DNA of 64,000 bases from Eutreptiella sp. 'Long Island Sound 2002' (GCA_964036045.1 OZ038379.1:21204001-21268000), one strand, 5' to 3'. Counted from the stretch's first letter, positions 7,201-59,350 are shown. Made by a program: numbers and translations. The notes: generated by a model from the sequence alone, not told the origin.

Positions 7201-10200
7201 GTCTGTGGTGCCCGACGTCTCTGCGCGGACCTTGCTGGTCAAATCGACGCACGTTAGTTCGTCATTAGCGAGCGTCGTCAAAGAGCGCAGCCTGGCGGGC
7301 TGCCGCTCGCCACTCCACCCGACGGAACGCTCGCCCCTCCCCACAAGCCCAGACTCTGCCCACATGAATGCACGGTGTGTCCTGCCAAAATCCAGGCACA
7401 TCAATGTGGTGCATGAGGGCGCCAGCAAGGTTTTTGTGTTGTTGGCTGACCATGCAGGAGTGCAACGGACCAGCACGCAATGGACAACCCCGTCAGGAAA
7501 TGAATGCTGTGGGCCGCACCCACTCGGAACGCATTTTGCCGTCTGGACCGGCCCGAAATATGTAATCGAAGTCCACGTCTACACTGCGCCACACCGTCGC
7601 CGTAGCACCCCCCAAGCGGCGTGCGCGCGGGGGGGTCTAATCCATCCATGAAACGGGTTTTCCACTGACAATATGACGGGCGGCAAGGTCGAGACGCCCC
7701 CTCTGGAGCCTAGCCTAAACCTTGGAAATATCAACACTTCGCCTTCAGCAGTCAAAAATATGGCTTCGGGATCCCGCATGACCCACACCTCTTCAAATAA
7801 CCCCCCCCCCTCTAGGGGACAACAATTTTGAGCAATCCGGCTGAAAAGTTGAGGTCAAATTATTCAGGGTGGATTTTCCCCATCATCAAAAAAGGGGAGG
7901 GTCCCCTCGCCCTGTGGCTCCTCAAATTCCATCCGGTGGAATGCTCGTATATGGATTGTGGGGGGGGGGGGGGGGAATGCATTAAGTATTAAGTATTAAA
8001 TAAGCAAGCAAGCTTGCAAACAACAACAACAAGCAACAGCAACACATGTCTTTTCCGTTTTGTTCATACCATACACATGCCATCGCTTCCGGCTCTACCC
8101 TACTCGGCAGCCTGGGGTGTGGGCCCCTATTTGGGAGGTGCCCTCCCGAATCTGCACAGCTAAAAACGGCCATTTTCCGCCCAAAACAGCCCAAACCCGT
8201 TCAAGACACGAAGAAAAACAATGCGACTCGCTAGTTTGCTTGTGTGAAGAGTTCTTTTCTGGCACCCACCTCCACAGGGTCTGAGAAATGGCCCAAAGAT
8301 GCCCAAGTTGACCCGAAATCTGCAGAGTTTGGCGCAAACAGCACCAAACCAAGAATGGACCGCATCTTGGGCTATGTAGCTCAAAATCCGATGTCGAGGC
8401 CCCTAGTCCACCCGCAACCCCGTTCATTAGTTGCACATTTTTTGGGAATTAAAAACGATTGTGTCCTTGAATTATCCTTCCATAGAACCATCTGGATCTT
8501 GAGTAATCCCCCCCCCCCGCGAAAAAAATTTTAAGAACACTTGCATAACATTTTCCCCAATAATGTTTTTCTGAAAATTCTGTAGCTTGCACGCATCCTG
8601 AGAGTTGGGAATCACTAGAAATCCTGAAAACAGAGGGAGGACTAAACAACAAAACTTCATGCGTATGTTTTCCCCTTGGGACTCTTACCCCACCAATTTT
8701 GGCCTTCCCTACAAGACCCATGTACTAAGGCGTGCTAGCACCTACTAGAGCAACGCACAAAACCCAAACCTGCCGGGGCCAAAAGGGTCCAACGGGGCTC
8801 TCTGGGAGCTCAAAACTGTCATTTCTCAATTTTTTTTTCCAGATGTTGCGTTTGGGGCCCAAACTCTGGATTTGGGAAGGGTACATGTGAATGCAAAACA
8901 TGGCTGAGTAGGGTAGAGCCAAAGCGTTGGAACAGAGAAAGGAAACGTCCTGTTGCTGTTTTTGTCGTTGTTTGTTGTTGGTAGCTGGATTTAAGGGGAG
9001 AGGGGCACAGTAACATTACAATCTCCAATCCACACTCTTCTCCCCACCCCATGCGGTGCCATGGAGATGGCGTGGCTATGTGCCTTTGGCCAAAGATGTG
9101 TCAAGGCATGGGCCAAAATGGGTTAAAACAGGCTCTAAATAGGCCAAAAATACGTGCTTGAGGATCCCAAGTGCCAAATATCCCTTTCGGAAAATGCATT
9201 TTTAGATGGCTTTTTGGATGTGTATTGGTCCCATACCGGTAGTGACCGATTTTCAAGGGTTTTGGGGATTTTCAGAGGGCCAAAAACGAGTCACAATGAG
9301 CTCAAAACAGGCTGAAAACACTTGTTTGACCATCTTAGTTATGAGGTTTGTTTCCTCGACGGTATGCAATAAACCCAATTTCTGTAACCTTCCTTGTTTG
9401 CTTGCGACGCACCTGCGGCACACAGAAAGAAATGACCAAAAAAAAAGGCACCAAAATTGGCCCAGAATCTATGCAATTTTGGCTGCCAGCCCCAAAACCA
9501 AGAAGATGCCGTATCTCGGGCCACATGGCTTGAAAATTTTTTTGAGGGCACCTAGTCCAGCCGAAACCCCCTTCTTGTGGTTTCCCACCCTCCAAATTGC
9601 CCAAACAGATGCCCAGACCCCCATCCCCGTGCACACTTGGTTCCAGCGAGCAGCTCGCTTGAATCCAAACTAGTTGGGGTCAAAATGGGTCCAACGGGCC
9701 CACCAGTGGTTTAAAAAAAAAAACTCTTTCCAAAAATGATCCTGGACCAATTGGGATGTTTGAGCCCGTTTGGGCTTGTCATGGCCTCAAAAAGTTGCCA
9801 AAAAACCTAAACTAGCCTTTGTTGAGGGTTTTCGGGACTTTTGATGGGCGCAAAATGGGCTCTATTCACTTGTTTAAAAAATCCCATGTGGTCTAGGATC
9901 ACTTATGAAAAAACGCACGTTTGACCCATTTTTGACCCACTTTTGGCCCCAAAATAGCCTTTTTGGCACCTTTGGAGGGCCATAACAAGCGCAAGCGAAC
10001 TCAAAACGGCCTCACACCACTTGTTTCAGCATCCCAATTGGTCTATGATCATCTCTAGAAAAAGCTTTTTTATGCCCTTGGTGGACCCAGTGGACCCATT
10101 TTGGCCCCAACTTGTGTTGAAGCTCACTGCTTGCTGAAGCCAAGTGGGCATGGGTTCAGGGGTCTAGACGTTCGTTTGGGTGATTTGGAGGGCCAGAAAC

Positions 10201-11034
10201 CACAAAAAAAATGGGTATTGCGGGTAGACTACCCCAGAATGCGATTGTGAGCCACATAGCCTGACATAGCCCAATACTCCAGAAGTAAAACATACATTTG
10301 AGCAATGAAATAAATACGGGCACTTTCATGGGTCTCATGTTGCACAGCAATGAACTCGCATGGTGCCATCTTTGACTGAAAAAGTCATGTAGTGTGAAAT
10401 GTGTGCCACTGTGCCCAGGGTTAGCCCCAACCTGCGAACGCCCATAAACAGGCAAAAGGCGGCTTTGCAGAAGGTCTGCTACCGTTTGTATGCGAGGTCA
10501 ACCAAAGGCAAGTGCAGACCTCTTTTACGTGTTCGAAATTATCACTGCATCAGATTTTCATGCTCCAAACCTTGTCAGCTATTATTATGGGAGAGGGGTG
10601 TAGTAACATGTATGCATGCACACACGTGTGCATGTTTATGTCTGCACATGTCTGCTTCGCCGCTGATGTCTGTACCTGTCATTCGCTGTTTTTCAGGAGG
10701 AAGTCCAGAGCTGGAGGATCTTCGGGACATTGCTCGTCCAGCAGATGCCAATGTATCCTTTATCAACAAACACGGCTGTCAAACGGTGTCGGGAGGTGAG
10801 GTCGTGGTGCGCGTGAACTGTGTGGCGCAGCGACACGTCACCGCCGGTGACAAGCACACCATAGCATCTTCCCGAAGTGCCCTCAGGGCCCGCAAAGAGG
10901 CCAATACCAGCAGCCACAGCCACAGAAATGACACATTGGAGTCCCAGCGGCTGCATGGCACTGCGCGCCGACGGCACAGAGCGTTGCAGGAGGAGCAGGG
11001 GGCTGGGGCTGTTGCTGGGGCTGCTCCGGATTGA
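942..11034 (+). CDS. MKS1: Meckel syndrome type 1 protein homolog (B9-C2 domain, ciliary transition zone); 9 exons, 1953 nt, 650 aa
   Basis: Exons 942-1212, 2178-2473, 2959-3105, 3369-3530, 4225-4366, 5389-5540, 6044-6263, 6925-7149, 10697-11034. All introns are GT-AG, phases are 1,0,0,0,1,0,1,1, and the total is divisible by 3. Motifs collinear with MKS1 as recalled: YYSKDPIQNLKVYVRL, VIGWQQKLLS, FTY, QTMRVMAALG, LCTVQAYADG, FGEV..VVVKYTVDLPGNW, GLPFE, PVLYLEV..LEGYGWLPL..PGSREVEVPLWRP, FFLGGSPELED, NKHGCQTVSGGEVVVRVNC, ARRR. Confidence 0.9.
2178..2473 (+). CDS. MKS1: MKS1 exon 2
   Basis: cttttag acceptor, aag|gttgca donor; Pro/acidic insert followed by SVFTYLGPKD and HFVRD. Confidence 0.75.
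2959..3105 (+). CDS. MKS1: MKS1 exon 3
   Basis: ttttctttttag acceptor, gag|gtgtgc donor; HNAVPQTMRVMAALGNPE matches the MKS1 QTMHIMADLG motif. Confidence 0.85.
3228..3275 (+). repeat. Decamer tandem repeat (gatcatatcc)n
   Basis: gatcacatct-gatcatatcc-gatcatatcc-gatcacatcc-ggtcatatc in MKS1 intron 3. Confidence 0.8.
3369..3530 (+). CDS. MKS1: MKS1 exon 4
   Basis: tatttcag acceptor, cag|gtcact donor; ERTLCTVQAYADGTFTMQP matches EHVLCTLKVDSNGVITVKP. Confidence 0.85.
4225..4366 (+). CDS. MKS1: MKS1 exon 5
   Basis: tttccactgcag acceptor, g|gtatgc donor; HYWYTV aligns with the WKYTI region; phases 0 and 1 fit both neighbours. Confidence 0.75.
5389..5540 (+). CDS. MKS1: MKS1 exon 6
   Basis: ccttgtctgcag acceptor, cag|gtgcac donor; RLLMSFVGSGRSF aligns with YLSSLVGTDF. 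Confidence 0.8.
6044..6263 (+). CDS. MKS1: MKS1 exon 7 (start of B9 domain)
   Basis: ttgttttag acceptor, tag|gtttcc donor; WFGEVMLVRDLHTPNVVVKYTVDLPGNW...LLGSTSQC. Confidence 0.88.
6925..7149 (+). CDS. MKS1: MKS1 exon 8 (B9 core)
   Basis: ttcttgcgcag acceptor, g|gtatgt donor; PVLYLEVY..LEGYGWLPL..PGSREVEVPLWRP..LSSFFLG. Confidence 0.92.
8020..10330. mobile_element. Degenerate pieces of the abundant ttttggcccc/aaaatgggtcaaaa repeat family inside MKS1 intron 8
   Basis: Shares (gcaa)n, gggctatgtagctcaaaat, aaaaatgatcct and cccattttggcccc motifs with the 52.3-53.5 and 56.3-58.9 kb elements. Termini not found; boundaries approximate. Confidence 0.6.
10697..11034 (+). CDS. MKS1: MKS1 exon 9 (terminal)
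   Basis: tttttcag acceptor; GGSPELEDL...INKHGCQTVSGGEVVVRVNCVAQ...ARRRHRALQE; TGA at 11032-11034. Confidence 0.9.
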
Positions 11035-51151: not shown

Positions 51152-52328
51152 GTATGATGCGTATTGGCCCCGTGGCCGGACCGGGTGCGGGGTGCTGCCC
51201 CCCCCCCCCCCCCCTTCCCCGCCCACTTGCAATAGCACGACCTTGTCTGGGCACACGGCGAATCCGTCCGACCAGTGGATTTCTGACCGCAGTTTTATGG
51301 TCAAGAATACAACAGGAAATGTTTGTTAGCGGGCTGTAGTGGGGCATAGGGGCTGGGCCGTGTGTGTGTGTGTGCGGTTGTTTGTGCTCATCACAACGTT
51401 GTGCCGAAGACTGCAACAGGCTGCCGCTTGGTGTGCCCTTCAAGCAACTTCGTGTCGTACCTTGTATTGGGGGGACTGTGGCTCGGGTGACCTGCGACCT
51501 CCTCCGGCCCCCGAGGGGCGCATGGGGCGTAGCCAGGACGTGTGGTCCGTGGCGCTCTTTGGCTGAGCAGAGGGGCACAGGTGGCGCAGCACAGAGTGCT
51601 GGACCAGCGGGGGGCGTCCTGGTGGATGGAAGGTCCTGGGGTGTGCTGAGCACTTCCCTCGCCCCAGGAGCCCCTTAGTGAGCCGAGCCCCCTAGTGAGC
51701 CCGCTGCGCCTGGGACACCTCAGACGAGATGGGACCCTGAGGGCTACACCGCTCGCCGACCCCTCCTGTGTGCAGGGGGGGGGGTGGAGGACCCGCATTC
51801 GGGTCTCAGCATGTGAGTCCCCACCAGCGGCCTTGGGGCAAGGCCCCCATGCCCCGCCCGCTGGGGCCCGGAGCACTGGGCACACACAGCCCCCCCCCCT
51901 CCCCTCAGCAGCACATGACCCCCCCCCCCTGAGGGGCACAGCACGGACGGACAGCACCACTGTGCGCACGGCGGAGGTCGCCCGCCAAGACAGACGCCGG
52001 GCCGGGCACCTCCCCGAGGTGAGACCTGGTAGGCCCCTTAGCATCACCCCCCCCACGGGGGGGGCGACTCCGCGGGTCCTAGGACGCCAACTACCCCTGC
52101 CCCCCCCCCCCCCCCTAGGGGCCTTCGGCCAACAGTTAGTTGCCAAAGGTGTCGCCCTCAGGCGTCCATGGGCGCCTAAGGCGCCCGATGCTACATGAAC
52201 ACCAAAGGTGCCTTAAGGAAAATTTGGTCCAATTTGCACCCCAACACTATCCTTAAACCCAACCTTGCTTCTAACACCCACCCCCAACCCTCAGCCTACT
52301 TCTATCCCTACACCTAACCCTAACCCTA

Positions 52329-53479
52329 ATCAAGACTGAATATTGGGACCGAGCTGGTGAGGGAGGGAACATCAACTATGATTGGTCAGGGACATCAAGA
52401 ATGATTCACACATTGATGGCTCTTGACAAAGTGAAATCAGCTTGCAAGTGAACCCCATCACCACAAGGCCCACTTTCAAGGCTTTTTGGACTTCTGAGGG
52501 GCCAAAATGCCCCAAAATGGGCTTAAAATGGGCTCATTACACCCGTTTGTGCACCCCAAATGGTCTAGGATGAGGTTTGGGAAAATGCATTTTTGACCCA
52601 ATTTTGACCCATTTTTGGTCCCAAAACAGCCCATTTTCAAGGCATTTTGGGATTTTCAGAGGACGAAAATGGGCCACCACAAGCTGGAAACGGTCCAAAA
52701 ACACTTGTTTTAGCATCACACATGGTCTAGGATCATTTTTGAGAAAAGTCAACTTTTTGCCCCTACTGGACCCTGTTGACCCATTTGGGCACCCACCTGT
52801 TTGGGCTTGAGCTTGCAGCTTGCCGCAGCCCATTGGGCCTAGGTATTGGGGTTTAGGCGTCCGGTTGGGCAATTTTGAGGGGTGGAAACCACAAAAAGTG
52901 GGGGGTTGCGGGTGGAGTAGGTGCCCTAGGAATCGCATTTTGAGCCATGTAGCCAAAGATATGGCCTATTCTTGGTTTGTGGTTGTCGGCATTTGGAGCT
53001 TCTGGGGGCCTTTTTGGAACGTTTCCGGGACATATCATGGCGTTAGAGGGCCGCAAAGAGCTCGTTGACACGGGGAAGTCAAGCCGCACGTGGAGTGTAC
53101 CCACCATTTCCCTTCGTTTGGCCGTTTTGAATGTGTTCCAGAGCTTTTTTGGCCCGAAAATGGCTGCTTGTGGCCCTAAATTGCAGTTTTTGAAACTGAC
53201 GTCGGCCACTTGCGAATCCCGTTCCCGGCTGCCACCGTTGAGTTTCTCGCTCAAACTTTGTGTGATTGTACTTCACACCCATAGGTATCATCCACCAAAA
53301 TTTCAGCCAAATCTAAAGCACCACGACGGAGTTCTGATTTTTCCCCATTTCGCGCGTGCTGCTGCTTGCTTGCTGCTTGCTGCTGCTTGCTGCTGCTTGC
53401 TGCTGCTGCTAAACCTGGTAGGTCCACCCTAGACACTAAAAAGGGTTATAAAACCAAGACTGGTTCCACCAGCTCGGTG
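52329..53479 (-). mobile_element. Non-autonomous element with asymmetric TIRs, copy A (1151 bp); Helitron2/Helentron-like architecture
   Basis: Minus-strand 5' end CACCGAGCTGGTGG; inverted copy CACCAGCTCGGT ends 19 nt before the 3' end; (GCAA/GCAGCAA)n near the 5' end; flanks gggctagggt|..|tagggttagg; no TSD. Confidence 0.75.
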
Positions 53480-53699
53480 ACCCTAGCCCTAACCCTAGCC
53501 CTGGCTCTCACCCTAGGCTAGGGTCAGAGTGAGTGTTGGGGTCCAAAATGAAGAGCGATGATGTGGCAAAAGCAGCCATGAACGAAATTGGGGGGATCTT
53601 GTTCAGCCCAATCAACATGGCTGGCATGGCCAAACCAACTAGCTGCAAAGGTTAGGGTTAGGTTTATGGTGATGGTATGGTTGGAGGGAGGGCAAGGGG

Positions 53700-54010
53700 A
53701 GGTAAGGGGAGCCTGTGCCCCCCTCCCCCCCCCAACACCCCAAATCGCCCCACCTGGACCCCCCCCCCCACCACCCCGAATTCCGAATTGCCCCACTTGG
53801 ACCCCCCCCCCCCAACCGACCCTCCCGGAGCCCCCCCCCCCCCCCCCCAGCCCCTCCTATACCCCCCCCCCCTTCGCCCTCCCTGAACCCCCCCCCTCAG
53901 ATGCCCCCCCCCCCCCCCCCCCCAAGGGGCCTCCGGCCAACAGTTAGTAGAGGGGGTAGTTGGCGTCCAGAACCGAGGGGTCGCCCCCCCGTGCCCCCCC
54001 CCCCACCACC
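53700..54010 (+). repeat. Extremely C-rich repeat (G4-capable on minus strand), ggccaacagttagt family
   Basis: More than 10 runs of C6-C19; homology to 12635-12900 and 52010-52150. Confidence 0.7.
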
Positions 54011-54313
54011 CCACATACGCACACAGACAACACTCACAGGCACGGCGGTATCTCCCTCCCACCAGCGCCTCAGTGAGGTTTGGGGATCGTCAGCTGTCTA
54101 GACAGCTGTTACATCAGGCAACCGGAGGCTGAGGCCCTGTCACACCAGCAACGTAAGGTCGCACAGGCTGTGGGACCCCCCGCCTTCTGTGCAAGCTGAG
54201 ACCCCCCCCCCCCCCCCGCACAAGCACGGCCCAAGTCAGGGACCGCTGTGGTCAGACAGGGATCCCGTGCTTCAATAAGGCCATGTTTATGCACGCCCCC
54301 CCCTGGGGGGGGG

Positions 54314-54573
54314 GGTCAGGCCCCATCGCAGTAGATCCTCATGCCCCCGTTTGGGGTTGAGGATCCTGACTTCTGGCCCCTGCCGTCACGCACGGTTGTT
54401 TTGTTATACTTCGTCCCCCGAATTCAGAACATTATGTGTAGCGTCAAAGAAAGTGAATGGTTTTTGTAGCGTGCGCTCTACAGTCCCCAGACCAGACAGC
54501 CGCGCCATGCACCCAATGCGCACCCGAGTTTGTCGCGGCATGTGCTTGACTACAGATCAGGGCACGCCTTTGT
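54314..54573 (+). mobile_element. Young dispersed repeat, copy 1
   Basis: 260 bp, 2 mismatches by eye against the reverse complement of 63741-64000; hairpin gatcctca-tg-cccc-cgttt-gggg-t-tgaggatc at 54334-54365. Confidence 0.9.
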
Positions 54574-54979
54574 TCCCTGCTTGCGCTTGAACCCCCCACC
54601 CCCCCAACCCCCTCTCAAGCTGCGTCCTTCAGCAGAGCCACCAACCCCCTGCTCAGTCCAACCAACCGTTGTCCATTGATCACAAACCCCGTCTGAATCC
54701 ATCACATCGGGCCTTCACAGGTCGGGTGCATCTTTGCAACAAGAAGTATACCATAGGCCAAATACTGCCATCAAAATCTCACCATCAAAATAACTAGGAA
54801 GTCGAGGGTGCCATCGTATTGGTGCATCACAGACGACCGTCATAGTTTGCACAACTTCAGGTCTTGTGCCAGCATGGAAATTTGCCAAGTGGCGATCTAT
54901 TTCTGTTTCGCTGTAAATTGCGATGTAAATTAATTGCTTGTTTTGATGCACACGCATGTGCGCGGTGGATTTGTCTCAG

Positions 54980-55142
54980 GCAAAGAGAGCTGAACGAATT
55001 TCATGCGTTGAGATCCAAGTTGTGTCAGTTTAGTTATCAATTTGCGCAATCCAATTTTGACCGCGACATGAACGACCTGGTGACACGAGTACAAGCCCAG
55101 GAGGATGCCAAGAGAGCGGCGAGGGAAGTGACTGCAGTCAAG
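54980..55142 (+). CDS. Next exon of the same unidentified protein (may instead run to TGA 55169)
   Basis: tttgtctcag acceptor in phase 2 completes AA+G (Lys); QRELNEFHALRSKL..FAQSNFDRDMNDLVTRVQAQEDAKRAAREV; aag|gtgcc possible donor. Confidence 0.55.
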
Positions 55143-56144
55143 GTGCCTCCTGCCTCAATCTGTATTTGACAAGCGGTTTTGGGCCTTGGTTTTGGGCCCA
55201 TTGCTCCTGGTGGCGATTGTAGCCCTTGGTGATGCTTGTGGCTGTGACGGTTGTGATGCTGGTGGTGGTGGTGGTGCTGCTGCTGCTGACAGTGGCAGTG
55301 TGACCATGGCTTTCACACACCCACGGTCATCCCCTCTACGGTCACGTGTATGAACCCTTCGTCCCAAAGTCCGGCCAGGCATCAGCCCCCCGGGGTCCGC
55401 AGAATGGCAAGGGATGCATGCCTCCTTTCTGGAAGACGGCGATGAGGTCTTTGCCCAATATCGCAGCAGTTTTGAGAACCGCCTCAGCTGCAAAGGAAGG
55501 AGGTGGCGCACTCAGCTGCAGGCTGAGGCGCATGGGGGTCCCTGTTTGGGGGCCGTTTGCCCTCGAACGGGAGGTCCGAGCGCCACTCTGCCGGGACTCG
55601 GAGTGAGGGGGTTCCTGGGGGACGCAAGTGATGCATCTCAAAACAGTCACGCCCTGATCCTGTTGAGGTATGTGTTTTGGCATCAACAAATCTGCCCGTT
55701 CCCGATGCCTTCGAACGCTTGTGACCCCGCCCCTCCCCAACATGAACACACTACCACACAGTGACATCCCCATTGCATGACGAAACCCACCCATCCGCCA
55801 TTTCTCATACATGCAACTTGCTCCAGGTATATCAGGCCAGAAGCAATATTGGAGCTCTTGCTGCTTTTTGGGGCATGGCGCATCTCCTCATGAAGCGCAA
55901 TAGAAGGGTCTGATTCCCTACCAAGCTTTGGAGAGTATGTTAGCGCGCCGGGCGCGCTGGGCAATCTTTTCTCTTATCTTCCCCCAGTTCCCCCCATTTT
56001 TTGTCCCCGTGTTGGGGACACATTGTTGTTTGAAAACGGATATTTTGATGCTTCTTTCGCATCGGGGATATCGTATATTTGGATTTTCACCCACTTTCAC
56101 CATTTTTAACACTTTTTTTTGTTCATTTCCACCACAACCACTCC

Positions 56145-56343
56145 TTTCTAGGTTGATTTATCCCCACCATGGGGACCCCGGGAAGGCAAGGGTGATGTAG
56201 CCATATTGATCTCTCCCCACCATGGGGACCCCGAGAACGCAAGGTGCCCTAACCCTATCCCCTTTCATAATGGCAATGGGGTTATGGTAGTTGTGTGATG
56301 CATAGAACGCTAACCCTATCCCCTTTTATAATAGGAATGGGGT
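56145..56343 (+). repeat. 53-bp satellite followed by 61-bp telomere-motif satellite (left flank of element B)
   Basis: tccccaccatggggaccccg units, then ccctaaccctatcccctttcataatgg..ggggtta.ggtagttgtgtg units. Confidence 0.85.
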
Positions 56344-56495
56344 CACCGAGCTGGTGGAACCCGTCTTGGTTTTATAACCCTCTTTAGTGTCTAGGGTGCA
56401 CCCAACAGGTTTGGCAAGCAAGCAAGCAAGCAAGTAGCAAGCAAGCAGCAAGCATGCGTGAAATGGGAAAAAATCACAGCTCCATCGTGGTGCTT

Positions 56496-56927
56496 GTGCG
56501 CCACCGCCGCCATCCAGTGAGGGAACAAGGACAGGGCCTCTTCATGCTCGATGCACGACCGCGACACCAGCAGTGCGTGCAGCGGTGCCCTCTGAAAGGT
56601 TGCCCGCAGGTCGCCGGGGAGACCGGCAAACGGGTTCCACGGCGGACGCTGCAGGATCCTCCCTGCCGGCGGGCAGAAGGGTATGTCACCGCGCAGGAAC
56701 GCGTATACCGCCCTCCTTCGATCTTGCATCGGCAGCTGCATGATCTGGGTGAGCCGATGGTTCCTGCGGGCATACACATCTTCCCCAATCTGGACCATGT
56801 CCTCCACAAAGAGCCTGGCCTTGGCAGGGCCCCGGGACGACGCCGCTCGCACCGCAGTGAACAGCCGCTTCAGGTCCCCGGGGACGACACCCGCCATCAG
56901 GGATTCAGTCCACCTGCGGCCGTGCTC
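56496..56927 (-). pseudogene. Captured GC-rich coding fragment (432 bp) inside element B
   Basis: Absent from copy A at the aligned position (gtggtgctt|tagattt); open on the minus strand across its whole length (EHGRRWTESLMAGVVPGDL..LFVEDMVQIGEDVYARRNHRL..). Confidence 0.6.
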
Positions 56928-58172
56928 GGGATTCGGCCAAAATTTTGGTCGATGCTACCTATGGGTGTGAGGGACAACCACACAAAGTATGAGCCAAAAA
57001 CTCATTGGCGGCGGCTAGGAGTGGGCGTCGCAAGTGCCAGACCTCCATTTCAAAATCTGCAATTTAGGGCCAAAATCAGCCTTTTTTTTTTTGCCCAAAA
57101 CCGCCCTACAACGTGATGAAAATGGCCAAATGACTGGAAATAGTGGCTACTCTACACATGCAGCTAGACTTCCCCGTGCCGAAGGGCCCTCTAGGGCCCT
57201 CTAACTCCACAATATGTCCGCGAACCACCCCCAAAAGGCCCCCAAAAGCCCCAAAATTTGTGCACATTGGCCGCCGACAGCCCCAAACCAAAAACAGACC
57301 ATATCTTGGGCTACGTGGCTCAAAACGTGATTCCGAGCGCACCTAATCCACCCACAACCACCCACTTTTGGTCGTTTCCAGCCCTCAAAATTGCCCTAAC
57401 CGACGCACAGACGCCCATACTTGGCTGCGGCAAGCTGCAAGAGGTAGCCCAAAGAGGTGGGTGCCAAAATGGGTCAACAAGGTCCACCGGGTGCAAAAAA
57501 ATGACTATTTTTAGAAAATGATCTTGGACCACATGGAATGCCAAAACAAGTGTTTTTGGCGCGTTTTGAGCTCGTGGTGGCCCGTTTTGGCCCTCCTAAG
57601 ATCCCAAAATACCTTGAAAATGGGCTGTTTAAGGACAAAAAATTGGTCAAAAATGGGTCAAAAGTGTGTTTTTCCAAAATTGATCCTAGACCAGTTGGGG
57701 TGCCTAAACAAGTGGAATGAGCCCATTTTTGAGCCCATTGCAACCCATTTTGGCCCCTCCAAAGTCACAAAATGCCTTGAAAATGGGTTGTTTCGCGACC
57801 AAAAATGGGTCAAAATGGGTCAAAAATGTGGTTTTTCCAAAAATGATCCTAGGCCATTTGGGGTGCACAAATAAGTGAAACGGGCCCTTTTTGAGCCCAT
57901 TGCAACCCATTTTGGCCCCTCCAAAGTCACAAAATGCTTTGAAAATGGGTTGTTTCGCGACCAAAAATGGGTCAAAAATGGGTCAAAAATGTGGTTTTTC
58001 CAAAAATGATCCTAGACCATTTGGGGTGCGCAAATAAGTGAAATGAGCCCTTTTTGCAAGCCATTTTGGCCACTCCAAAGTCACAAAATGCCTTGAAAAT
58101 GGGCTGTTTTGGGACCAACAATTAGTCAAAAATGCATCAAAAATGTGTTTTTCCAAAGATACTTTTGGACTA

Positions 58173-58653
58173 CCGGGGGGGGGGGGGACTCCGCGGGGGG
58201 AATTATCCACGGGGAAAATTCCGTATTTCAACTCGGTGCGGAATTTTCCCCTCATTTTTCGAGGGGAGGTGCGGAATTTTCCCCATGCGGAATTTTGCCT
58301 GTGTAAGCCACCGTAGGACCCGGTTGGGTTTTTTTCTTGGCGTGATCATGCTGAATAAGGGGGCTAATGTGTGCTAGTGTCTTATCAGCAGCAAGGCGCA
58401 AGCTTGTGGGTATGCTCTGCAATATTTCCCGCCACTCGTTGTGTGCCAAAATGCCAAGGATTGTCAATGGACGCCGATCCGTGGTGCTTGAACGAAAAGA
58501 CAAGTCGCCTGCTGCCGTTCGTTGTCAATCCGGTCGTTGTTAGCTCATCCCCTTTGTTTGCAATGCACTCAAGATTTGGGACAGGTGCGGAATATTCCCC
58601 GTGCGGAATTTTCCCCTGCGGAAAAAACCCCGTACAAAATCCCCCCCCCCCGG
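58173..58653. mobile_element. MITE (481 bp) with CCG(n) TIRs and TA duplication, nested in element B
   Basis: TA|CCGGGGGGGGG..CCCCCCCCCGG|TA with TA at 58171-72 and 58654-55; subterminal gcggaat(t/a)ttcccc repeats at both ends in inverted orientation; interrupts a tandem unit of B. Confidence 0.85.
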
Positions 58654-58956
58654 TATTTCGGGTGCACAAACAAGTGGAATGAGCCCTTTTTGAGCCCATG
58701 TTGAGCAATTTTGGCCCCTCTCAATGCCGAAAGGGCCTTGAAAATGGGCCACAAATGGCTTCAAAACTGGTCAAAACCATGGTTTTCCAAAAATGATCCT
58801 AGTCCAGTTGTGGTGCCCAAACGGATGAATACAGCTCATTTTGAGCCCCGTTTGAGCCGCTCTCATCCACTTTCCAGTGCGTACCTCATTTGTCGTTGAA
58901 GTCTCCTAGACGATGTTCCTTCCCCCACCAGCTCGGTCCCAATATTCAATCCTGGC

Positions 58957-59350
58957 TAGGGTAGTTCTGTGTTATGTAGAAGCCTATCCCTATCCCCTTT
59001 CATAATGGGAATGGGGTTTGGATAGTTGTGTGTTGCATAGAACTATACCCTTTCATGATGGCTATGAGGTTAGGGTAGTTGTACAATGCGTGGAACCCTA
59101 ACTCTATCCCCTTTCTTGATGGGAATGCGGTTAGGGTCGTTGTGTGTTACATAGAACCCTAACCCTATCCCCTTTCATAATGGGAATGCAGTTAGGGGAG
59201 CTGATTTAGCTATATTGATCTCTCCCCACCCTGGGGACCCCGAGAAGGTAGGGGTGATGTAGCCATATTGATCTGTCCCCACCATGGGGACCCCGAGAAG
59301 GCATGGGTGATGTAGCCATTCCGCCCACATGTGGGCCCCCGAGACGGCAG
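58957..59350 (+). repeat. 61-bp telomere-motif satellite followed by 53-bp satellite (right flank of element B)
   Basis: gaaccctaac units at 59093 and 59154 (61 bp apart); gtgatgtagcc units at 59254 and 59307 (53 bp apart). Confidence 0.9.

Follow-up and report, generated by a model that had tools for sequence, protein, structure and literature searches.

Two repeat copies, A and B, in a 64,000-nucleotide window (the whole stretch of DNA analyzed) of Eutreptiella sp. 'Long Island Sound 2002' probably belong to a high-copy, non-coding and non-autonomous rolling-circle transposon of the Helitron2/Helentron type (HINE/DINE-1-like), which is specific for GGGT^TAGGG in both strand and phase. With a Helitron-like build and a single fixed TTAGGG site, this family would represent an uncommon, target-specific form of a known class of transposon. 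The assignment is based on the observed end structure, the target rule with its fixed strand and phase, the lack of target-site duplication, a paralogous empty site, and homology to RepHel-bearing elements.

Architecture of the two copies

The features of the two copies and their flanks are as follows (positions within the window).

52290-52328, minus strand: 3' flank of A, TAGGGTTAGGGTTAGGTGTAGGGATAG.., where the telomere-like tract resumes (sequence; the same degenerate tract recurs after other copies)
52329-53479, minus strand: copy A, 1,151 bp, 'CAGTCTTGAT' 3'-end subtype (end-to-end alignment with B, matches of the termini)
52329-52360, minus strand: 3' end of A, subterminal inverted CACCAGCTCGGT plus 19-nt tail CCCAATATTCAGTCTTGAT (sequence; match with two mismatches)
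53357-53410, minus strand: 5' microsatellite of A, GCAGCAAGCA-type (Tandem Repeats Finder)
53466-53479, minus strand: 5' terminus of A, CACCGAGCTGGTGG (exact match), left arm of the asymmetric inverted repeat
53480-53516, minus strand: 5' flank of A, degenerate telomere-like tract (..GGGCTAGGGTTAGGGCTAGGGT on the element strand), within a small carrier repeat
56283-56343, plus strand: left flank of B, belonging to a 61-bp satellite unit and terminating in ..AATGGGGT, which joins with 58957 onward
56344-58956, plus strand: copy B, 2,613 bp, 'CAATCCTGG(T)' 3'-end subtype
56344-56357, plus strand: 5' terminus of B, CACCGAGCTGGTGG (exact match)
56414-56454, plus strand: 5' microsatellite of B, (GCAA)n, 10.8 copies (Tandem Repeats Finder)
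56496-56927, plus strand: foreign insert in B, 432 bp, absent from A and other copies
57581-58157, plus strand: tandem array of B, 163-nt period, 3.6 copies (Tandem Repeats Finder; alignment)
58173-58653, no strand assigned: nested MITE in B, 481 bp, poly-G/poly-C inverted ends (sequence)
58925-58956, plus strand: 3' end of B, subterminal inverted (C)CACCAGCTCGGT plus 19-nt tail CCCAATATTCAATCCTGGC (sequence and matches)
58957-59010, plus strand: right flank of B, TAGGGTAGTTCTG.., remainder of the same 61-nt satellite unit (satellite period 61 nt)

The reverse complement of A and the forward sequence of B align across both termini and the core, and the two copies are homologous from end to end. 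An earlier note on this DNA had described an identical beginning, an inverted 12-mer exactly 19 nt from the far end, a 5' microsatellite and central tandem repeats, all of which were recovered. The inverted CACCAGCTCGGT occupies 52348-52359 (minus strand) in A and 58926-58937 in B, with exactly 19 nt remaining to the element end in both cases, and the family consensus likewise contains a 12-13-nt inverted copy of the 5' terminus 19 nt from the 3' end. Upstream sequence distinguishes the A-type from the B-type subfamily, but the last ~48 nt are common to both, which points to constraint on the termini, the 3' end being fixed as ..TGGT or ..TGAT without a tail. Among the first 100 3' ends listed for chromosome C1, approximately 90 are of the A subtype. 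More than 25 other copies match the last 66 nt of B exactly; the final base of B is C, which is T in almost all other copies.

B is longer than A because it contains a 432-bp transposon fragment, the nested 481-bp MITE and extra 163-nt units (A has about 1.5 units, and the array of B resumes after the MITE and extends to about 58850). The 432-bp insert is an antisense ORF fragment of another abundant transposon; its first-look candidates (98-99% identity) number at least 1,529, and every one stops at its right edge. It matches L077:35-465, within a 554-aa ORF that has no Pfam match, and is skipped in contigs of other copies. The MITE is bounded by a TA target duplication (58171-72 and 58654-55), and the MITE-free state, in which 58170 is joined to 58654, was found in 14 contigs of other copies. 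Another copy of the family, truncated in appearance, carries an RNase H-like ORF, which was read as a nested insertion.

Folding predictions indicated a hairpin in the first 27 nt of the 5' end of A (z = -2.6 over a 70-nt stretch), the corresponding value for B being -0.3, while the last 90 nt of both copies folded no better than shuffled sequences (z ~0) and had no convincing 3' hairpin. In addition, the left end holds the heptamer TAACCCT, which is exactly complementary to the AGGGTTA found across the insertion point and is paired with CTAGGGT in a small hairpin.

Target site and distribution in the genome

Both insertions lie between ..GGGT and TAGGG.. without duplication, as had been claimed before: A is preceded by GGGCTAGGGT and followed by TAGGGTTAGGGTTAGG, and B by AATGGGGT and TAGGGTAG, respectively. 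The claim that removal of B restores the satellite consensus was also borne out, since its rejoined flanks form one intact satellite unit with no base extra or missing, in register with five neighbouring units; the repeat is therefore the target rather than a component of the transposon. The 5' flank of A belongs to a small carrier repeat (approximately 53480-53665), which is occupied at three different tract positions in nine loci; this, and the diversity of the flanks beyond the tract, likewise mark the repeat as target rather than cargo.

In the 2.28-Gb genome, the 17-mer of the 5' terminus had 8,985 exact matches and the 25-mer of the 3' terminus 7,749, numbers far above chance given that the reversed control of each had none, and the copy number in this alga is roughly 8,000-9,000. 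Exact genome-wide counts placed GGGT directly before 7,517 of the 5' termini (84%) and TAGGG directly after 5,837 of the 3' termini (75%), so the proposed GGGT^TAGGG rule holds throughout the genome and the flanks of most termini are not random. Among 48 distinct 5' flanks, T occupied position -1 in all cases and GG occupied positions -3 and -2 in 47 and 46, respectively, TAGGGT being present in 36. Among 62 distinct 3' flanks, TAGGG was present in about 52, and the +1 base was T in 53, A in six and C in three. These data agree with an insertion within TT (or T/C), and either T could be assigned to the element. Both the distinct flanks and the genome-wide counts show a left flank that is more constrained than the right. 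The G-rich strand was the top strand of the element at every junction listed, and the spacer between head-to-tail copies was a multiple of six in 25 of 29 cases. No target-site duplication was found at A, at B, or among the 48 and 62 distinct flanks, which, together with the precise paralogous empty site at B, substantiates the insertion without duplication that had been proposed.

Nearly every insertion thus uses a single position and orientation in TTAGGG-type repeats and leaves no scar. The copies are scattered over the first 23 Mb of chromosome C1, and the sequence beyond the telomere-like tract varies between them. The landing sites are mostly short, interstitial tracts of telomere-like sequence, and a small older transposon carries many of them. 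The true telomeres examined, 12 kb in all from two chromosome ends, contained no copy, which would be unexpected if any GGGTTAGGG were a target. Public read contigs yielded neither a polymorphic nor an orthologous empty site.

Relationship to RepHel Helitrons of the same genome

The same genome contains a RepHel ORF family (2,100-2,600 aa; Helitron_like_N, PIF1 and SAP domains), whose loci L075-L078 are embedded in (AT)n on both sides and which also has non-autonomous derivatives of about 1.18 kb. The core of A is 72-75% identical over approximately 800 bp to the 5' non-coding region of this family, in the same order and orientation. From its 5' terminus to the ORF, and oriented like the ORF, the RepHel family has a GCAA-type microsatellite, the homologue of the A core and the same tandem repeats, and this 5' part is common to at least 11 copies at 97% identity. 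The two families also share embedding in simple repeats and the asymmetric inverted-repeat layout, the RepHel family beginning with CTACACCCCTCTCC, which is inverted subterminally at its 3' end; they differ in these termini, in a tail of 10 nt, in the (AT)n surroundings and in the presence of a coding partner. No RepHel-encoding copy bounded by CACCGAGCTGGTGG and CACCAGCTCGGT plus 19 nt was present among the few loci read of at least 863 RepHel candidates; the Helitron loci read had other termini or no similarity. Helentrons proper have an AP-endonuclease domain in their transposase; Pfam detected no endonuclease domain in the RepHel ORF of L077/L078, which belongs to the sister family and is not a proven partner.

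Alternative explanations

Several other origins of the pattern were weighed. It is unlikely, albeit conceivable, that circular DNA carrying a telomeric unit integrates by homologous or microhomology recombination into any telomere-like tract, so that the donor, rather than an enzyme, would dictate the phase of the junction. Such circles would account for the fixed orientation and phase, the absence of target-site duplication and the head-to-tail arrays one or a few hexamers apart, and the (AT)n flanks of the sister family could be explained alike. However, the satellite unit around B has a single TTAGGG-like motif and its joined flanks have no added hexamer, whereas a circle with a telomeric unit would have added one, and B therefore counts against this origin, as do the many 5' flanks consisting of just two units beside unique DNA, the stronger constraint on the left flank and the kinship with RepHel-bearing elements. 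That the family depends on an element with a tyrosine recombinase (Crypton, DIRS or TATE-like), in which a circle recombines with the telomeric hexamer, appears very improbable. Site- and orientation-specific insertion without duplication is compatible with such a non-autonomous partnership, and Leishmania TATE elements sit in telomeric hexamers; nevertheless, no recombinase gene was seen with these termini, the left flank of B and the 3' end of the element share at most 1-3 nt, which is too short for a crossover core, and both the architecture and the internal homology point to Helitrons. The TATE-like partnership suggested in the earlier note found no support, and the insertion of B shows no duplicated hexamer core.

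A SINE-like retroelement that uses target-primed reverse transcription at telomeric repeats is no easier to credit. TRAS/SART of Bombyx, MoTeR of Magnaporthe and endonuclease-deficient Penelope-like elements are the classic telomere-repeat-specific and orientation-specific elements, and first-look candidates were more numerous for the 3' end than for the 5' end (1,814 vs. 334), but by exact matching the 5' and 3' termini are about equally frequent (8,985 and 7,749). Moreover, the 5' ends are precise, neither a poly(A) nor a simple-repeat tail is present, truncated-looking copies show unrelated sequence at variable breakpoints and were read as carrying nested insertions, and neither the subterminal inverted repeat nor the Helitron homology fits. 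It is scarcely credible that the copies are immobile by themselves and instead belong to a larger composite repeat, or to segmental duplications, with the GGGT/TAGGG flanks included. The same carrier repeat does hold many copies, and block duplications are clear at L019/L020, L026/L027, L040/L046, L050-L053 and the C20 array; yet the diversity of the flanks (48 distinct 5' and 62 distinct 3') largely refutes an invariant larger unit, and the carrier is occupied at three different positions, the satellite that holds B is unrelated, and copies are spread along the first 23 Mb of chromosome C1. The points against the Helitron reading are the lack of a terminus-matched RepHel among the loci read, of a 3' hairpin in A and B, of polymorphic or orthologous empty sites in read contigs, and of copies at the two telomeres. 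A Helentron/Helitron2-type non-autonomous family with telomere-repeat specificity, which the earlier note had offered as one of two possibilities, remains favored by the target rule, the absence of duplication and the RepHel homology.

Comparison with known systems

HINEs such as Drosophila DINE-1, whose layout was reportedly set out by Thomas et al. in 2014, share with the present family the absence of target-site duplication, a 5' terminus inverted shortly inside the 3' end, insertion between T's, a 5'-proximal microsatellite, central tandem repeats, a non-coding nature, very high abundance and a tendency to form arrays. The family differs from them in its target, which is 9-13 nt long (TTAGGGT^TAGGG) with one strand and phase as opposed to TT alone. 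It also lacks a predicted 3' hairpin, whereas Helitron2/Helentron elements are said to have hairpins at both ends (defining features as given in PMC13085455).

The telomere-repeat specificity had been thought undescribed, a view that is now outdated, as Helitrons of Paramecium aurelia have been reported to insert strand-specifically into telomeric repeats (BMC Biol 2026, PMC13085455). Telomeric repeats of one polarity lie on both sides of these telomere-capping elements and were interpreted as the insertion target rather than a piece of the transposon; strand bias is absolute and internal satellites are abundant (PMC13085455). The present family shares these features. The Paramecium elements are autonomous, located at chromosome ends and contiguous with the C-rich strand (PMC13085455), whereas the present copies are non-autonomous, number in the thousands, are interstitial and contiguous with the G-rich strand, insert at one defined nucleotide and are absent from the two telomeres examined.

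There is also a functional resemblance, not membership, to the IS200/IS605 family (e.g., IS608), in that the left flank is more constrained here too. IS608 is an HUH element that moves as a single strand in a strand-specific manner and inserts 3' of a short fixed left-flank sequence without target-site duplication. IS200/IS605 elements differ in having a Y1 transposase without helicase, a prokaryotic host and a tetranucleotide target read by a DNA guide of the element. TRAS/SART, MoTeR, Athena and Leishmania TATE likewise insert into the telomeric repeat unit at a fixed site and in a fixed orientation; their mechanisms rely on a reverse transcriptase or a recombinase, their ends have poly(A) or are variable on the 5' side, and none has the asymmetric inverted repeats or the RepHel homology of the present family.

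Proposed mechanism and implications

For the Helitron2/Helentron-type reading, we infer HUH chemistry, a single-stranded intermediate and the identity of the enzyme, which would be a RepHel protein (an HUH nuclease combined with a PIF1-type helicase) that a relative provides in trans. This protein might recognise the conserved terminal stretches (~60-100 nt on the 5' side, ~48 nt on the 3' side) and nick the top strand between T and CACC.. and between ..GGT and TAGGG. The single strand would be transferred to a TTAGGG-type repeat, entering its G-rich strand between the two T's of GGGT^TAGGG with no target duplication, and the second strand would be filled in by the host. The more constrained left flank fits an IS200/IS605-like model, where cleavage site and target are one and the same sequence, located 5' of the left end.

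A tentative and rather doubtful extension is that this euglenid holds a Helitron2-like clade in which each family is set for one simple-sequence target (a TTAGGG strand and phase here, (AT)n in the sister family), the address possibly being an exchangeable module. Such a module could be a DNA-binding domain of the transposase: the RepHel of the sister family has a SAP domain at its end, a type of domain known to bind AT-rich DNA, and by analogy the telomere family would be predicted to have one of the Myb/telobox type. Alternatively, it could be a DNA guide in the left end (TAACCCT vs. AGGGTTA). If true, such a retargetable clade would represent a eukaryotic, naturally retargetable system of single-strand DNA integration.

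Structure of the two copies

The window corresponds to C2:21,204,001-21,268,000 of the assembly, and the parts of copies A and B to which the text refers lie in it as follows.

Features of copies A and B in the window
52329-53479, minus strand, copy A
56344-58956, plus strand, copy B
56496-56927, 432 bp, antisense, part of an ORF from a different, very abundant transposon, placed after the microsatellite and before the core of B
58173-58653, 481 bp, MITE (inverted ends of poly-G/poly-C, TA duplication) nested inside a 163-nt unit of B

When A is reverse-complemented, it aligns with B as homologous sequence across the full length. Both copies start with CACCGAGCTGGTGGAAC, and in both the 3' end is formed by CACCAGCTCGGT and then a 19-nt tail (A, CCCAATATTCAGTCTTGAT; B, CCCAATATTCAATCCTGGC). 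Since the 12-13 nt preceding this tail are the reverse complement of the initial bases of the element, the asymmetric inverted repeat proposed in the earlier note is real, and its inner copy does stand 19 nt from the far end. The GCAA/GCAGCAA-type microsatellite that had been described near the 5' end is present about 70 nt inside it in both copies. The central tandem repeats were also recovered, but with a period of 163 nt instead of 162, and with about 1.5 units in A and 3.6 units plus a further part in B, where one and about four had been counted. The extra length of B relative to A consists of the additional 163-nt units, the 432-bp insert and the nested 481-bp MITE. The 432-bp fragment has at least 1,529 candidate matches in the genome, at 98-99% identity, and the corresponding ORF (554 aa or more) has no Pfam match; this fragment could represent either capture or filler DNA. 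G-run ends resembling those of the nested MITE were also seen at breakpoints of other disrupted copies of the family (locus L032).

Insertion site across the genome

Copy A is flanked by GGGCTAGGGT and TAGGGTTAGGGTTAGG, and copy B by AATGGGGT and TAGGGTAG, in both cases with the GGGT and TAGGG context that had been reported and without target site duplication. The chromosome ends of this genome carry (TTAGGG)n, so the label "telomere-type" is correct for this organism. The same context was found genome-wide: in the 2.28-Gb assembly, GGGT precedes 7,517 (84%) of the 8,985 exact matches to the 5' 17-mer CACCGAGCTGGTGGAAC, and TAGGG follows 5,837 (75%) of the 7,749 exact matches to the 3' 25-mer CTCGGTCCCAATATTCARTCYTGRT, while reversed control patterns of both termini gave no match anywhere in the genome.

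Sixty loci were read and identical flanks discarded, which left 48 distinct 5' flanks and 62 distinct 3' flanks. T occupies position -1 in all 48 of the former, G occupies -2 in 46 and -3 in 47, the hexamer TAGGGT is present in 36, and information reaches to about -14; TAGGG was found in about 52 of the 62 3' flanks, and the left flank is clearly under tighter constraint than the right. The G-rich strand is the top strand of the element in every junction listed. The junction can be written equivalently as GGGT^TAGGG with an element CACC..GGT, or as GGG^TTAGGG with an element TCACC..TGG; of the two T's, the element contributes one and the target one, and the sequence fits either assignment.

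Copies are dispersed, with about 100 across the first 23 Mb of chromosome C1, and they often form head-to-tail arrays whose period is 1,150-1,180 bp. Of 29 spacers between successive copies, 25 have a length divisible by six, including TAGGGT (10 times) and TAGGGTTAGGGT (7 times) as well as spacers of 18, 24, 30 and 72 nt.

The telomere-like repeat as target

Judging from the sequence of the junctions, the telomere-like repeat is the target of the element and not one of its parts. The satellite that hosts B has a 61-bp unit with a single GGTTAGGGTAG, and joining the two flanks of B gives one intact unit, with no base gained or lost and in register with five neighbouring units. A is inserted in a small carrier repeat with a degenerate telomere-like tract of its own. 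Among nine loci, this carrier has been filled at three different positions of the tract, and ..AGGGT precedes the element each time. For some other copies, just two hexamers separate the element from unique DNA. The earlier note would have been refuted by flanks that always travel with a larger element or duplication. The flanks are instead diverse, and GGGT/TAGGG is no fixed component of a longer duplication, although blockwise duplication was seen for some loci and arrays.

The carrier (window 53480-53665 and 52260-52328) has telomere-like tracts of opposite polarity at its ends (CCTAACCC.. versus a ..TTAGGG-like tract), and provides many landing sites of the family. Beside it lie long poly-C/poly-G runs and C-rich repeats (window 53700-54300 and 51900-52130), where the very high depth of the read contigs points to another abundant repeat.

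A sister family with an identified transposase

A search of the genome for the Helitron Rep domain gave at least 863 first-look matches belonging to several lineages. One RepHel lineage, read at two places (C13:10431000-10447999 and C11:32953000-32970999), has ORFs of 2,100-2,600 aa that contain Helitron_like_N, a PIF1-type helicase and a C-terminal SAP domain. From its 5' terminus to the ORF, and in the orientation of the ORF, this family carries a GCAA-type microsatellite, a region homologous to the core of A (72-75% identity over about 800 bp) and the same family of tandem units. At least 11 copies have this 5' part in common at 97% identity, and it is therefore integral to that Helitron. 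Its termini show no sequence relationship to those of A and B: at the 5' end stands CTACACCCCTCTCC, which recurs inverted near the 3' end as GGAGAGGGGTGTAG and is followed by a 10-nt tail, ATTRGAGGAT, and both ends adjoin (AT)n in every copy read. The (AT)n family has its own non-autonomous derivatives of about 1.18 kb at high copy number, and a protein search with the N-terminus of its RepHel matched only the same family (82-100% identity). Repeated small hairpin motifs (GGTGTACTCTTAACGGAGTTACC) occur in its 3' region. Within the window, a diverged copy on the minus strand (9185-10607) is about 70% identical to the core shared by A and B and has a CTACACCCCTCTCC-type terminus like that of the (AT)n family, and does not lie beside (AT)n.

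Because of this common layout and homologous interior, A and B belong to a sister family of the (AT)n Helitrons, which shares their architecture and differs in its ends and in its simple-repeat address. Most of the features that define Helitron2/Helentron derivatives, as summarised in PMC13085455, are found in the sequence of A and B, namely the lack of target site duplication, asymmetric inverted repeats, T^T insertion, a 5' microsatellite and central tandem repeats. The exceptions are a RepHel copy with the same termini among the loci read and a predicted 3' hairpin, no fold of the A/B 3' end being better than that of shuffled sequence. The family is real and abundant, and is a target-specific variant within a known class of transposons.

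The search for an autonomous partner covered 16-18 kb around three RepHel genes (the two loci of the (AT)n family and one of a second lineage) and 3.5 kb around 12 others, and none of these genes is bounded by CACCGAGCTGGTGG termini. Family copies without the other end within 1.5 kb were considered as longer coding elements and rejected, being disrupted by sequence read as nested insertions. The second RepHel lineage (C18:26797000-26812999) has a 2,028-aa ORF with CCCTAACCCTAA 140 nt past the stop codon and does not resemble A or B. Possibly, this lineage is a further telomere-associated Helitron whose polarity is opposite.

Alternative explanations and direct joints

A passive composite repeat is contradicted by the diversity of the flanks. 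A telomere-specific retroelement is contradicted as well, by precise 5' ends, comparable counts for the two termini and the absence of a tail; the "truncated" copies show unrelated sequence at variable breakpoints, with an RNase H-like ORF in one of them, and so are read as nested insertions. Another explanation is that a circle carrying a hexamer recombines into the tract, either by homology or through a tyrosine recombinase, which would account for the fixed phase and for the single-hexamer spacers; however, no hexamer was added at B, where the shared sequence is at most 1-3 nt.

Direct 3'-to-5' joints without a hexamer are what a circle or a rolling-circle concatemer would be expected to produce. 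There are 115 of them, almost exclusively within a single segmentally duplicated array on C20, so they amount to one or two events and constitute weak evidence. This region (C20:17.78-19.03 Mb) has arrays of 1.01-1.07-kb units with hexamer-free 3'-5' joins, and the array blocks recur about every 55-60 kb as a large higher-order or segmental duplication.

Telomeres and empty sites

No copy was found in 10 kb of pure TTAGGG repeats forming the right telomere of C11, or at the left end of C2, where the telomere (2.3 kb) and 7.7 kb of subtelomere were covered; the thousands of copies of the family lie at interstitial positions. Possible causes are telomere turnover, selection or a protective effect of telomere proteins. 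The starts of C18 and C13 lack TTAGGG, with a satellite of about 50 nt in one and a (GTTAAA)n-like repeat in the other, and hence are probably assembly ends and not chromosome ends. A joint skipping B was absent from the public-read contigs listed, which speaks neither for nor against a polymorphic empty site, and a second organism label in the public runs had identical unique DNA and therefore offered no independent orthologous site.

Proposed mechanism and choice of target

Two 3' subfamilies have in common only the terminal ~60-100 nt (5') and ~48 nt (3'). Most likely, a RepHel supplied in trans would recognise these conserved ends and nick the top strand at both junctions, and the single strand would integrate into the G-rich strand between two T's, in which case the unfilled target would be an uninterrupted GGGTTAGGG. 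In IS200/IS605 elements, the sequence 5' of the left end is both cleavage site and target; the stronger constraint on the left flank here is similar, which is a likeness in mechanism and not a sign of membership.

Two leads may explain the target address. One is a DNA-binding domain of RepHel: SAP domains bind AT-rich DNA, and the SAP domain at the end of the (AT)n-family protein predicts a telomere-binding domain in the partner of the A/B family. The other is the left end itself, where TAACCCT is the exact complement of the AGGGTTA spanning the insertion point and forms a small hairpin with CTAGGGT. Both motifs are conserved, but no more than the remainder of the first 60 nt, so that conservation cannot single them out, and no obvious counterpart of such a guide was seen in the (AT)n sister family.

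Significance

Only one report of Helitrons targeting telomeric repeats, in Paramecium (2026, PMC13085455), was found in the literature searched. Those elements are autonomous and located at chromosome ends, whereas the A/B family is non-autonomous and interstitial, and their strand polarity is opposite. Taken together, the two cases suggest that telomere-repeat targeting in Helitrons arose more than once and with opposite strand polarities. The literature search found no paper on euglenid Helitrons.

Helitrons are usually described as selecting just a dinucleotide target. The thousands of copies of the A/B family share a target of about 9-13 nt in the telomeric repeat, on one strand and in one phase, and are a large natural data set on how a long target is specified by an HUH-type transposase or its DNA ends. 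The (AT)n sister, with its homologous interior, identified RepHel and different address, is a ready comparison for the determinant of target choice. In addition, the family accounts for much of the structure of the interstitial telomere-like tracts and of the 1.1-1.2-kb tandem arrays in this genome.
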